Assembly (NCBI GenBank): GCA_965644295.1
Contig: CBFFRP010000090.1
Span: 96,833 to 160,832, forward strand
Reading direction: 5' to 3'
DNA: 64,000 nt
Source of the DNA: Paraphysomonas bandaiensis
Lineage: Eukaryota > Protista > Chrysophyceae
The notes beneath the pieces are model-generated. The model worked only from the letters and a program-made list of their open reading frames with translations, was not told the origin of the DNA and did no database searches. Positions within the stretch are counted from its first letter, which is position 1. Each line of letters opens with the position of its first letter. Below, one piece after another: positions 11,391-49,620 of the stretch. The translations under genes were made by a program, and so were the position numbers.

Positions 11391-11691
11391 TGCATATTTT
11401 CTGTTTGTTTCGCATGTGTTTGTGGTTAGAATGTTACATAGTGATTTGGTACGTTAGTCACCGTAATAATGTGTGTTTTTACACTTATGGAGCTGTTATG
11501 TTGCAGTGTTTTTCAATGGTTAGTAAACTGAATGTGTCTCTTAGGCCAAAGGTGTAACAAGTTGCCTTTATTTCGTATATATCGTAGTTAAGGCAACATG
11601 TCGTGGCCTGGAATAATGGATGTATCACAATCACATGAAGCGGCGACTGCTATGCTCTATGCTGTAGTCTAGTGTTATAATATGTACCGCC

Positions 11692-12024
11692 CACTCAGGA
11701 CCTTAATACAGAACCCTGTACCTCAGAGCCTGGCGGAACCTTATCCCAAGGGGAGACCCCCGGACAACTCGCGCCAGTGAGTCCTAAGACACACAAGCAG
11801 GGCGAAACTCACAAACAACAAGAACGGAAGTGGTTGCACCATGGTGCTTGCGGCGACGCACAAGCAGCTTCTGTAGCGCTAAATAGTAGGATAATAGAAT
11901 TTGTGCTGATTAGTTATGGGTAGAGGTCTAACTAGTAGATCTAGCATACCACTGGCCACTATATCGGAACGAGTTTTTAACGCCTATTGCTAAATAAAAA
12001 GACTTTCAATATAAAGACTTTCAA
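11692..12024 (+). mobile_element. 5'-truncated LINE-like 3' end with 16-bp target-site duplication
   Basis: TATAATATGTACCGCC occurs at 11676-11691 and 12025-12040; internal sequence is homologous to 12150-12440(-) and 49210-49440(-); tail (AAAGACTTTCAATAT)x2. Confidence 0.85.
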
Positions 12025-12149
12025 TATAATATGTACCGCCGACTATGGGCTTCGGTTAAATAATCAATTTTGTATGTTGGGTAGTCTTGAAGTTAACATA
12101 TAAGAAGGAAGAGTAAAGAGTATAGTCGAAGATGTAGAAGAATATATTT

Positions 12150-13900
12150 TTATATATCAAAGTCTTATCAAGAGCACTAGGCGTCAAGAATCCGCACCAA
12201 AAAAGTAGCTAGATTAAAACTAGTCAACTTCTACAAGTAACTCACTAGTACAAATTTTCATATCCTACAATGTAACGCAAGCACCAAAGTGCGACTACTT
12301 CCGTTTTTATGTTAGGGAGAAGATCTCTATCGACGTAAGTCCTTGGAGTACAGATGGGTTTAGGCAGGGGAGGTCCTTGGGGTAGGGCTTTGCAAGGCTT
12401 TGGGTAGGCACAGGATTCTGTATTAGGGAGTCGAGTGTTCCTATAGCCTGAGATACGTGGGCGAGGGGGTAGAAAGAGGCTCCAGTATGCCTGGAGATTT
12501 CGCGGACTGCGAGTAGAGCTTGGGCGAAGTAATATAGCTGGCAGCGCCCGCGCTGCGGCATTTCCACTTGTGCAGGGTTTGTGGGGTTGGTAGACGTGTG
12601 GGGTCAGCTATGTCTCCTTGTTGCACCTAGTATGCGACGAACCCGCGGTTTCCTACGTTTCTGCCGGGTTATAGCGGAAAGTCTATGTGGCCCCTTGGGT
12701 GTGGTAACGTAACGGCGACTGCGGTCTTGAATCAATTATTTTGCGGCTGTATATAGAGCGGCTGGAGAAGATTGGCAACTGCCTTTTCTAGATTACGAAG
12801 TCCTCGTGAGCTCAAAGCACAGTTGTATTGTGCGCCAAACACATTCTCCAGCTGGGACTCAGTGATAGTCCCCGTCCAGAGTCGCTCAACCTGCGATGCT
12901 GAGATATTCCAGGCTCCACTGGAGAGTCTCTTGAGAATGGCGCCACGCCAAGTTGTTGGCAGGGTCGGGTCTCGTTGTAGGTCCCGGAGTCTCTTCTTGT
13001 GTCTCTGAAAGGCGGATTCTCATATCTGTGAGATGGAGTCGTGAGAGAGTCAAGTCGAAAACCACAGGCAGTGCATGTGGCGTTGTTCAGGTCTAGACCA
13101 TATTTTGTTTTGGACCAATTCTTACCAATGCAGAAGGATTTGTCCCATACCAGGGCTATGTTGAGTATGCGCTGTCGCAGGTGTGAACTGTCCTTAACCT
13201 TTGTTCTGTGAACAATCTGCCAGAGCCAGTTTATGCGGAAGTAAGGCACCACTCTCTTTCCAGAACCAGGTGCGCTATCAAGATTATGATCGTAGAGTTG
13301 GTCGCGAAGCGCAGCATAATTCACAAGCGTCCATTGGTCACGAAGGGTTGAGAACTCAGTGATCATATAGTCTGTGACGTACGTCCGGCGTGTATCAGAA
13401 AGACGTCAGTGCCATACTCGGTTTCATGGCTCGGTTTCACTGAAAGTGTAGTTGTGACGGCTTAGCATGCGGTCAACCTCTAACCAGCTACCCTGCAACC
13501 GCGTCTGCTATGTAAATTCATATGTCCATTCAGCTTCGTCAGTGGTGCGCCTTTCGGGGTGGGAGCGGACCCAGCTAATGTTCCTCTTGGTAAACAGCTT
13601 AGTTGCCACGATGCTCTCAAGGAAGACCCCTTTGGCACGATGCCCTAGCGCACGTCGTCGTGAGGAGAGGGCTTCCACAGCTATCATGAATACGGCCTTA
13701 CAATCAGTATTGGTAGGAATGTGGACGGGTGCTCGTGAGGTGAGTATGAGAGCTATGATAACTGCTAGTAGTTCTTACGCATATGGGTCAATGCCTTGTA
13801 TTTGTAGTTTCCATTGGTTTGGCATGTATAGATTTATAGATAATCTAGTTGTCCGTGGAGATAATAGATTTAATGGAGCAAACTTAGAATGAACTCGTGC
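12150..13900 (-). mobile_element. degenerate non-LTR retrotransposon (LINE) 3' part with RNase H domain and C-terminal Cys/His motif
   Basis: Minus strand ~13810-13490 reads YA*ELLAVIIAL...NTDCKAV...ISWVRSHPERR.../IYIADAVAG (RNase H E, D, WV.SH and AD..A motifs), then TCTACG...H motif at ~13080-13020; stops and frameshifts present; ends in the family tail GATAAGACTTTGATATA. Confidence 0.8.
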
Positions 13901-25339: not shown

Positions 25340-25760
25340 GCTTAAGCCAAGTGACTGGATCCTGAAGTCAGCAGATGTCAGGTGTATCAACTTTCTGCGT
25401 GTTCACTGCATTTGCTTGAGTAATAGAGCGAAAATGGTTGAACCTCGAAGCAGGGCCTTATAACCGTTAATAGTAATGCCATTATAATTGCCGGGAACTG
25501 GACTACCGTTAATGGACCATGCTTTGGTCTTTGGTGCTTATGGTGACGCACAAGCAGTCCCGAGACGGTTGCCCGCCACCAGTAGTATATAGCAAATCTA
25601 GTTATTAGCTAGTCTATAGACATAAACTAGTTTCTGTACGCAACCGTACTCATGTAATAATCAGACTTTCATATATATGGTGACGCACAAGCAGCATTCG
25701 TAGCACTAAAAAGTAGGATATCAGAGTTAAACACTAGCAAGTTTAATTGTTTTGCTACAC
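25340..25760 (+). mobile_element. cluster of three nested or tandem LINE-like 3'-end fragments
   Basis: 25357-25444 matches 37021-37083 plus 37520-37550; 25492-25678 is a variant 3' end with tail AGACTTTCATATA; 25679-25730 is a third truncated copy (GGTGACGCACAAGCAGC...AGTAGGATATCAGA). Confidence 0.75.
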
Positions 25761-25824: not shown

Positions 25825-26032
25825 ACCAGGCTCTGCTGGAGAGTATCTGGAGAATGTCATCACTCCAAGTTGGTAGGGCCGGGTCTCGTAGTAGGTCCCG
25901 GAGTCTTCTTGTGTCTCTGAAAGGCTGATTCTCGTATCTGTGAGATGGAGTCTTGAGGACAATCAAGACACGTATGTTGTTTTGTTCACGTCGAGACCAT
26001 GTTTTGTTTGGGTCCGATTCTTGCCAATGCCT
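25825..26032 (-). mobile_element. LINE ORF C-terminal fragment homologous to 12910-13132
   Basis: Direct DNA match (e.g. gggtctcgtWgtaggtcccggagtc...tgtgtctctgaaaggcKgattctcRtatctgtgagatggagtc); shared peptide TPSHRYEN.PFRDTRR. Confidence 0.85.
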
Positions 26033-36759: not shown

Positions 36760-37702
36760 CCAGCGCCGACCCTGCAGCTGTCGAACTTTCCTACAACAAA
36801 GTCGGACTGGCACTTTTTCGTGGTGTTCTGTGTTCTGTGTTCTGGGGGAGATAAGTACCGGAGAGGTTTCTTCTGAGAAACGATCGTGTCCGCATATATA
36901 GTCAGCATATACTGTTCTTCCCACTCATAGCCAAATGCTTGACGGGAGAATGGGCTTACCTGAAGGGCGTCCGGGGTATTGGGCTGCCTGCATCCGGGCT
37001 GTTCACCTTAGGGACTCAAAAATCCTGAAGTCAGCAAATGTCAGGTTTCACAACATTCTGCTTGCTCACTGCGTTTGTTTGGGAAGGGATGCGTATCAAT
37101 TAAGTGACGCAGGGTGTAGACTTGCCGTCTCAATTTCAATTATTGCTATTAAATGTAATTATTTAATACAAGACTACATTAGCTGCCAATATATAGCTAC
37201 CTCAACTGTCATTTCATTCCAGAGGCGATGGTTCATGCGTAAAAACATCTGTCACTCCAAATGCCAAAGAGTCATACTCTTGCGCAAATCCGTCATAACA
37301 ATCTTAGCTCTACTGAACAACCTTTCAACCTTATTGGTTGTGGCATGTAAGTGCTTCATGCTGTGGTAACGAGTTTGCTGGTTAAGATGTGCTCGCTTCC
37401 ACTGTCTGCTACCAACAATCAATCGTCATTCTGAACTAGACTCTCACTGTCATCATCTTCTTCATCATCATCGAACAAGAATATTTTAATATGATCCTTT
37501 TCCGTCCGAGTCTCAAAGCGTTTGAGTGATAGAGCGAAAGTGATTGCACCTTGGTGCTTGCGGTGACGCACAAGCAGCTTTCGTGTCGTTAAACTCTAAA
37601 TAGTAGGGTATCAGAATTCAGCACAGTTTAGTTGTTTAGTTATATTGCAATACTAAATTAGTCCTATTTGTAAGCGCCTATTGCTAGTAATAAGACATTC
37701 AC
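36760..37702 (+). mobile_element. LINE-like 3' relic interrupted by a hAT fragment
   Basis: 37021-37083 plus 37520-37550 is colinear with 25357-25444; full 49-nt motif at 37535-37583; tail cgcctattgctagtaataagacattca matches 11981-12008; 5' boundary approximate. Confidence 0.7.
37170..37517 (-). mobile_element. degenerate hAT-type transposase C-terminal relic
   Basis: Minus strand reads RYHSMKHLHATTNKVERLFSRAKIVMTDLRKSMTLWHLE*QMFLRMNHRLW, preceded by an acidic tract; homologous to 560-789. Confidence 0.8.
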
Positions 37703-49209: not shown

Positions 49210-49620
49210 TCATATCCTTCTATATAACGCTGCGAAAGCTGCTTGTGCATTGCCGCAAGCACCAAGGTGCGACCACTTCCGTTGTTGTATGTAAGGGAGA
49301 ATATCTCTATGGACGGGAGCCTTTGAGGTGCATGTGGGGCTAGTCAGGGGGGAGGCCCTAGGTCCTAGGGAAATGGCTCTGCAGGACTTTGTGGTTGTAC
49401 AGGATTCTGAAGTTATGAGTCGAGTGTACCTAGCCTGAGAAACATGGACAAGAGGATAGATTGGTGGGGCGCCATCGTGGCCTGTGGCAGAGAAGGAGCT
49501 GGCGGAGGCTGTACCCTGGCGTTTCCAGCGGTTTCCGTCGTGTGTTTCTACGTTCCAATCGTGTGTAGCTACGTTTCTGACGTGTTCTGGGGAGTAATCT
49601 ATGTAGCCCCTCCTTATTTA
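49210..49620 (-). mobile_element. 5'-truncated LINE-like 3' fragment flanked by ~85-100-bp imperfect direct repeats
   Basis: Colinear with 12270-12700; full 49-nt motif at 49233-49281; flanks 49107-49209 and 49624-49706 are similar. Confidence 0.8.

Follow-up and report, generated by a model that had tools for sequence, protein, structure and literature searches.

R2 elements carry a restriction-like endonuclease and have a fixed rDNA target, and their 3' UTR is a multi-helix RNA that is specifically bound by the R2 protein to start target-primed reverse transcription. The trypanosomatid ingi/RIME, L1Tc/NARTc and SIDER groups include non-autonomous, non-tRNA retroposons that rely on a LINE, with which they have conserved blocks of sequence in common, in these cases a 5' signature (Pr77), and they have poly(A) tails. 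LINEs of the stringent type need a 3' stem-loop for mobility, which is bound by the region of ORF2 between the endonuclease (EN) and the reverse transcriptase (RT) (PMC4176376, PMC1636434). SINE superfamilies (CORE, V, Deu, MESC and Snail/Nin-DC) are defined by a central conserved domain and exchange their modules in a jigsaw-like fashion (PMC4758252).

We analysed a 64-kb stretch of the genome of Paraphysomonas bandaiensis (62.5 Mb, 669 contigs), C90:96833-160832, referred to here as the window, which carries a 49-nt motif that had been proposed to form a three-way junction at the 3' end of a retroelement family. The 61-nt core to which this motif belongs is genuine and abundant, an RNA module of the sense strand whose closing helix has been selected. 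Like the tails of eel UnaL2/UnaSINE1 and zebrafish ZfL2-1/ZfL2-2, it is a structured LINE 3'-UTR RNA common to non-autonomous partners (PMC1636434, PMC4176376), and it further resembles the UnaL2 and ZfL2 tails in lacking poly(A) dependence, in having a defined 3' end with an occasional short terminal duplication, and in maintaining a stem alongside a specific loop sequence. However, UnaL2 and ZfL2 present single hairpins in the last ~60 nt, whereas here a three-way junction is predicted 150-190 nt from the end, and where known LINE/SINE pairs share the terminal part of the element, here an internal core is accompanied by a separate terminal block across a variable spacer. The element itself is a giant single-ORF SET-APE-RT LINE of a stramenopile, unlike the L2-clade elements. 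A multi-helix 3'-UTR RNA is a feature shared with R2, although in our case protein binding is something we infer and the core has no sequence or Rfam similarity to R2. As in the SINE central-domain superfamilies, the core is common to families with different heads and tails and modules are shuffled, but the domain is also found in the 3' UTR of an autonomous LINE and the heads are not tRNA-derived; because autonomous LINEs carry it in their own 3' UTR, the shared domain has an obvious source and role. In contrast to the trypanosomatid pairs, the shared blocks lie in the 3' UTR and poly(A) is absent.

The 49-nt motif was confirmed at all three places given for complete copies, 11825-11873(+), 37535-37583(+) and 49233-49281(-), against a chance expectation of 0.00 from shuffles. 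A degenerate 32-nt pattern matched the same three copies and one variant (25526-25557), with 0.00 matches expected from shuffles, and R1, a covariance model derived from 32 copies, scored the three complete copies at 87.1, 80.4 and 77.7 bits. The partial copies of the original prediction also proved genuine, comprising 12253-12309(-) with an R1 score of 15.9 bits, the 5' half of a core at 25424-25445(+) and a 3' half at 25679-25730(+). The first complete copy, copy A, has the following features:

11677-11691, no strand: 5' copy of the target-site duplication, ATAATATGTACCGCC, identical to the 15-mer at 12026-12040
11692-12025, plus strand: 5'-truncated LINE copy A, 334 bp, comprising the last 29 codons of the ORF, the core-bearing 3' UTR and the terminal block; has the common 3' end in the LINE-tail alignment
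11778-11780, plus strand: TGA stop of the truncated LINE ORF, 38 nt 5' of core column 1 and homologous to the stop of the 1,468-aa RT ORF at locus L032
11819-11879, plus strand: 61-nt core of copy A, R1 87.1 bits; RNAalifold gives the same junction
11824-11831 with 11867-11874, plus strand: core helix P1
11833-11834 with 11864-11865, plus strand: core helix P1b
11836-11839 with 11844-11847, plus strand: core helix P2, loop CAUG
11849-11852 with 11857-11860, plus strand: core helix P3, loop GCGA
11880-11899, plus strand: conserved single-stranded extension UAAAUAGUAGGAUA..., common to families F1-F4 along with the core (73-nt shared stretch, all-against-all BLAST)
11979-12013, plus strand: 3'-terminal block, AACGCCTATTGCTAA...AGACTTTCAATAT, also in F4 and F5 tails
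12014-12027, plus strand: second, tandem copy of the element's final 14 nt (AAGACTTTCAATAT), read from the sequence of copy A
12026-12040, no strand: 3' copy of the target-site duplication, a perfect 15-mer match to 11677-11691

The borders of copy A are mirrored by read depth, which rises from 0 exactly at 11689-12024 in four sequencing runs. The remaining features of the window, named by the sequence classes F1 to F5 described below, are:

12253-12309, minus strand: decayed core with its 5' half kept and a deletion after it, at the 3' end of another LINE fragment, the second; R1 15.9 bits, flank matches 49254-49460
12613-13801, minus strand: 5'-truncated ORF fragment of an F4-type LINE lineage, ~50% aa identity to the F1b ORF (tblastn against aa 2498-2915 of the L066 ORF)
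25359-25445, plus strand: F3-type head, then the 5' half of a core (GCGAAAATGGTTGAACC); matches 37022-37081 and 37522-37551
25492-25562, plus strand: rearranged single-copy variant, with a unique 5' part containing the hairpin GGACCA/TGGTCT, then the P2 3' strand, P3 and an F5-type P1 3' strand (TCCCG); partial recurrence in the genome
25679-25752, plus strand: 5'-truncated copy that starts inside P3, with an F2/F3-type tail, identified by sequence match
37529-37589, plus strand: core of an F3-type non-autonomous copy, P1 CGAAAGU/GCUUUCG, P3 loop GUGA; R1 80.4 bits
37673-37704, plus strand: 3'-terminal block of the 37529 copy, 83 nt 3' of the core, identified by block match
49227-49287, minus strand: core of an F4-type LINE tail, in which P3 is GCG/UGC, includes a G.U pair and has the loop GCAA; R1 77.7 bits
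49288-49460, minus strand: F4-type sequence upstream of the 49227 core, with the LINE ORF end and 3' UTR start; 74% identity to 12276-12473, assigned by head cluster

Another short F4-type LINE ORF fragment, 79% identical to 12909-13131, is found at 25826-26030(-). The window copies are insertions between ordinary genes, to which the long ORFs in their neighbourhood belong (tubulin-tyrosine ligase, Nup160, PIG-V and a W2-domain protein). The sequence at 25492-25562 had been put forward as an extended variant of the motif in which P2 is lengthened by a new helix. It is present as described, but the P2-extending helix is a unique rearrangement: within 25470-25600 only positions 63-131, the 3' half, recur elsewhere in the genome, the variant P3 (TATGGTGACG) is unique among the 100 TCCCG-class copies listed, and the broken 5' half of another core lies just upstream. 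The variant is thus one rearranged chimeric copy and no propagated structural variant, and provides no evidence of selection since it is single-copy with a unique P3.

Across the genome, the inner 25 nt of the motif match 2,558 sites when up to two mismatches are allowed, or about one per 24 kb, compared with 0 for the reversed pattern, and the best 150 candidates of a covariance-model search, which were scored, are all near the consensus. The core is carried by an autonomous LINE. Locus L032 has a 1,468-aa ORF with an RVT_1 domain and a TGA stop ~48 nt 5' of the core, and two full-length single ORFs of 3,016 and 2,788 aa (L066:321-9371(-) and L067:319-8685(-)) contain SET, Exo_endo_phos (APE) and RVT_1 domains, with the SET domain of the giant ORF directly upstream of the APE endonuclease and RT. 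Neither OTU nor RNase H domains were reported for the giant ORF by Pfam at E<=0.01. The motif is accordingly part of a LINE family's 3' UTR, the ORFs with the SET, APE and RVT_1 domains ending 10-48 nt upstream of the core across lineages. Its proposed position at the 3' end of the retroelement holds in so far as it lies in the 3' UTR, but it is internal, ~40 nt past the stop and 150-190 nt from the element's 3' terminus. There are 1,316 candidate places for the giant ORF, 38 of which were scored, and the LINE was recently active, since among the matches listed nine are 100% identical and stop-free.

Copies of the core carry the marks of retroposition. In an alignment of 30 genomic loci, the commonest class, F1, shows a single fixed 3' end and ragged 5' ends that lie 20 nt to more than 1 kb upstream, and some 5'-truncated copies start exactly at P1. 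Comparison of the 3' flank with the upstream region identified a direct repeat of at least 10 nt at 12 of 43 copies and at none in the reversed control; target-site duplications measure 10-20 bp, and the copies examined have no poly(A) tail. The common element end is ...AGACWTTCAATAT or ...TTCAATAT, i.e. AGACWTTCA(A/C)TA(T/C). Of 68 distinct copies, 52 end in a second shared block, AACGCCTATTGCTAA-ATAAnAAGACWTTCAATAT, which lies 36-104 nt 3' of the core across a variable spacer. The stretch common to all classes amounts to only ~73 nt, namely the 61-nt core plus UAAAUAGUAGGA. The sequence that follows P1, UAGCGYUAAA (11875-11884; UAGCGUUAAA), is complementary over 10 nt, with one bulge, to UUUAACGCCUA, with which the terminal block begins (11976-11987), making a candidate long-range helix that would close the variable spacer; this pairing was rejected as unsupported, as common variants disrupt it and carry no compensating change. 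At L011:1551-1788, a second 5'-truncated tail directly follows the 3' end of a first one in tandem, with 96.7% identity. This arrangement, together with the 14-nt terminal duplication of copy A, hints that the template slipped or that priming was repeated at the 3' end.

Classes were defined by upstream sequence, four kinds of which join the same core, and the different heads of all families meet it at one shared 5' edge. Class F1 consists of LINE tails in two sublineages, a and b, that are 72% identical in protein, F4 is the end of a LINE lineage ~50% identical in protein (e.g. window 12613-13801(-)), and F5 the end of a LINE lineage, found on a Tara Oceans contig, that is 39% identical over the last 517 aa. 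Class F2 is non-coding, ~510 bp long, with a defined 5' end and internal 25-40-nt repeats, and F3 is made up of the F2 head plus an 85-nt insert. In the F2 elements at L010, L023 and L005 the fixed start, CCCTCAACAAAGTC..., lies ~320 nt upstream of the core, and the heads hold two to three internal repeats of the 25-40-nt unit GGGCCCACCTCAAGGGYATCCGGG. The head clusters and the defined 5' end of F2 bear out the earlier suggestion that the motif is common to LINE sublineages and to non-autonomous elements with unrelated heads. No similarity was detected between the F2/F3 heads and the LINE, including its own 5' region. SINE partners had also been suggested: non-autonomous carriers do exist, but their heads are not of the tRNA type, ARAGORN predicting no tRNA genes in 11 loci and Rfam (E<=1) giving no hits on eight loci with family heads. 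A crude double-pseudoknot descriptor of an HDV-like fold gave 84 hits in the F2/F3 copies analysed compared with 24 in shuffles, all of them copy-specific, with no fold common to these copies. Many copies are decayed, deleted or truncated. Three independent copies, L004:935-973(+), L009:1711-1749(-) and L024:2605-2642(-), lack exactly P2 and P3 with P1 intact, the deletion joining two GCAC direct repeats (GCAC-cuugGUGCUUGCGGCGAC-GCAC).

RNAalifold returned the same three-way junction from the 32-copy alignment and from a MAFFT alignment of 13 lineage representatives. P1 pairs columns 6/8-13 with 49-54/56 (8 bp) and has a 2-bp extension (15-16 with 46-47), P2 is predicted as GCAC-CUUG-GUGC and P3 as UGCG-GNRA-CGCA. 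Covariation was assessed on 60 distinct copies aligned to the covariance model, on the 13 lineage representatives and in four pattern censuses. In the 60 copies, 91.9% of cells are paired compared with 89.0% after shuffling and covariation is 0.187 compared with 0.138, with slid partners at 0.071 or less; the corresponding values for the 13 representatives are 94.4% and 86.9%, 0.348 and 0.215, and 0.143 or less. None of 500 shuffles reached the observed value in any of these four comparisons. The signal resides almost wholly in P1, in which both sides change at five to six pairs: 9-53 is GC, GU or AU, 10-52 is AU or GC, 11-51 is AU, GU or GC, 12-50 is GC, GU or AU, and 13-49 is UG, UA or CG. 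The haplotype GGAGG/CCUCC is found in ~26 copies, with four further copies showing a G.U intermediate and one an A.C, CGAGAAU/RUUCUCG is found in at least 19 copies, with an intermediate family (F2b) that keeps an A.C mismatch, and GGGA/UCCC, the F5 form, in 226-313 copies. These compensated haplotypes are amplified sublineages, not single decayed copies, and three P1 variants of the original prediction (CGGAAGT/GCTTCTG, CGAAAGT/GCTTTCG and CGGAAGT/GCTTTCG) are likewise true lineage haplotypes. Shared descent of the copies inflates the tally of compensated cells relative to independent events, which at the lineage level number roughly five to six in P1 and one in P3.

The one compensated pair of P3 is 34-39: the main class has G-C here, both F5 sublineages have A-U, and the window copy at 49227 has G.U. 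The P3 loop is always a GNRA (GCGA, GUGA or GCAA) throughout the copies, as had been noted. The P2 stem is invariant, with a loop of CUUG, CAUG or CAAGU, and covariation therefore speaks neither for nor against this helix. The covariation claimed for the motif as a whole thus stands for P1 and for one pair of P3, with P2 uninformative. Conservation of P2 and of most of P3 could reflect a sequence-specific contact rather than a helix, and an alternative long hairpin (UGCUU-GCG...CGC-AC-AAGCA) may compete with P2. The conserved G.U pairs at 8-54, 13-49 and 16-46 would become A.C in the complement, which assigns the fold to the sense RNA. When sequences are folded singly, their energies do not improve on those of shuffles (z -1.5 to +0.9). 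Rfam gave no hit at gathering thresholds in the whole window and, at E<=10 in 11500-12500, only chance miRNA, snoRNA and lncRNA hits away from the motif, which agrees with the view that the motif matches no known family.

Between LINE lineages the motif is more conserved than its flanks, as predicted: F1a and two F4 copies have 100% identity in the core, compared with 32-66% for upstream 50-75-nt blocks, 42-66% for the flanks and ~50% for the proteins. Within the F1 lineages, the last 350 nt, including ~110 nt of the ORF, are 0.8-0.9 identical compared with ~0.45 further upstream, and there the core belongs to a larger conserved tail rather than being uniquely conserved. The nucleotide identity of 0.8-0.9 that F1 lineages show at the end of the ORF (from -180 to -70 when counted from the core, as in window 11692-11780) suggests that a constraint on the RNA overlaps the coding end or that 3' modules have been exchanged. 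The identity between distant lineages could reflect tail exchange by template switching and not long purifying selection.

Outside this genome, the Tara Oceans contig encodes a LINE C-terminus ending in LPKGRPPD followed by a stop and, 10 nt on, an F5-type core. A 1,377-nt contig of JGI 3300018983 (L076) has an exact F1b-type core at 1231-1291, 42 nt after a 328-aa gene of which only the last ~36 residues resemble the LINE C-terminus; the contig may represent a host transcript whose 3' UTR contains a truncated LINE tail. The core-bearing Tara and JGI contigs may come from the same organism. Two exact-pattern scans of metagenomes for the core gave no matches, and four contigs with related SET-APE-RT ORFs end before the 3' UTR. 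SET, APE and RT genes 49% identical to the LINE are also present on a 7,310-nt contig (GCA_002726235.1, PBSN01000010.1; L069) of a metagenome-assembled genome labelled 'Nitrospiraceae bacterium', probably as eukaryotic contamination of the bacterial bin. Contigs cover the element in four runs, of which two are DNA, one is presumed to be RNA and one is a poly(A) marine metatranscriptome; depth peaks 10-40-fold on the core, and loose contig ends join F1b, F4 and F5 heads to it. This agrees with the copy numbers and puts the repeat in RNA libraries, contigs being blind to transcription, strand, expression level, RNA ends and cleavage.

The core is probably a stringent-type LINE 3'-UTR recognition module for target-primed reverse transcription (TPRT) that has been borrowed by non-autonomous partners, with binding and priming as steps that we infer. 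Under this model the sense transcript would fold the core into a Y-shaped three-way junction, which would be bound by the element's own protein, while the terminal block (...AGACWUUCAAUAU) would anneal by microhomology to the nicked target, core binding and annealing jointly starting TPRT. Any RNA that gained the core and the terminal block would then be copied in trans, and the model proposes that non-coding families with unrelated heads carry the core because RNAs tagged in this way are copied. A bolder version, which we advance tentatively and with less confidence than the recognition role itself, is that the 61-nt core might be a portable, self-contained 'retrotransposition tag' of undescribed fold (a three-way junction with GNRA and CUUG tetraloops), specifically bound by the long APE-RT linker (about aa 1495-1950 of the 3,016-aa ORF) of a new clade of giant SET-LINEs, conserved while the proteins diverged to 39% identity and repeatedly captured by unrelated RNAs.

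Another role at the RNA level, in stability, nuclear export, control of translation or termination of the giant ORF, or RNP packaging, could have led the partners to keep the core likewise, and this we consider unlikely though worth weighing. Such a role would fit the location of the core 10-48 nt past the stop in every LINE lineage and the co-conservation of the last 110 nt of the ORF with it, and the terminal block alone could serve as the priming signal. However, a translation-linked function would be useless to the non-coding partners, in which the core is almost unchanged, and 5'-truncated copies that start exactly at P1 were still inserted. Similarly improbable is a core that has no specific recognition role and acts as an RT pause site or template-switch hot spot, its identity between lineages reflecting recent tail exchange; chimeras would share everything 3' of the core because the RT switches template there. 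All families' heads do join at the same 5' edge of the core, modules have been shuffled (F3 combines the F2 head with an insert, and spacers differ) and one window copy (25492-25562) is chimeric, but exchange alone leaves unexplained both the amplified double and triple compensatory changes in P1 and a variable or deleted spacer between two kept blocks.

The original prediction had left room for an uncharacterised catalytic RNA, a reading that gained no support. A new self-cleaving or processing three-way-junction ribozyme would have the appropriate topology and conserved junction strands, and the lack of a match to known families makes room for a new class. Nonetheless, hammerhead, twister, twister-sister, pistol, hatchet, hairpin and HDV-like ribozymes gave no Rfam hits at E<=10 in 11500-12500, and heads and tails on both sides of the core have been reverse-transcribed together in thousands of copies, so that efficient cleavage at the core would destroy the template; we regard this possibility as very improbable. 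Equally hard to sustain is the idea that the repeats spread a regulatory or small-RNA element selected by the host, for although copies lie between ordinary genes and the core is the deepest-covered part of RNA-library contigs, its depth simply follows copy number, the DNA runs having a peak there too, and many copies are decayed, deleted or truncated as neutral insertions would be.

To our knowledge, how LINE RTs choose their template has been worked out in detail for just a few elements, all from animals and all with simple hairpins. The principle that a LINE and its partners share a structured 3' module is already established, and the present finding extends known biology with a new structural example from a protist LINE, comprising ~2,560 copies, a three-way-junction candidate and natural compensatory variants of P1. 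The several LINE lineages and parasitic families constitute a ready natural mutational series. If the core does act as a portable tag, it would provide an orthogonal RT-RNA recognition pair from a protist. For the P. bandaiensis genome, the core explains a major dispersed repeat, and model R1 supplies a 61-nt marker for annotating LINE tails and their non-autonomous partners.
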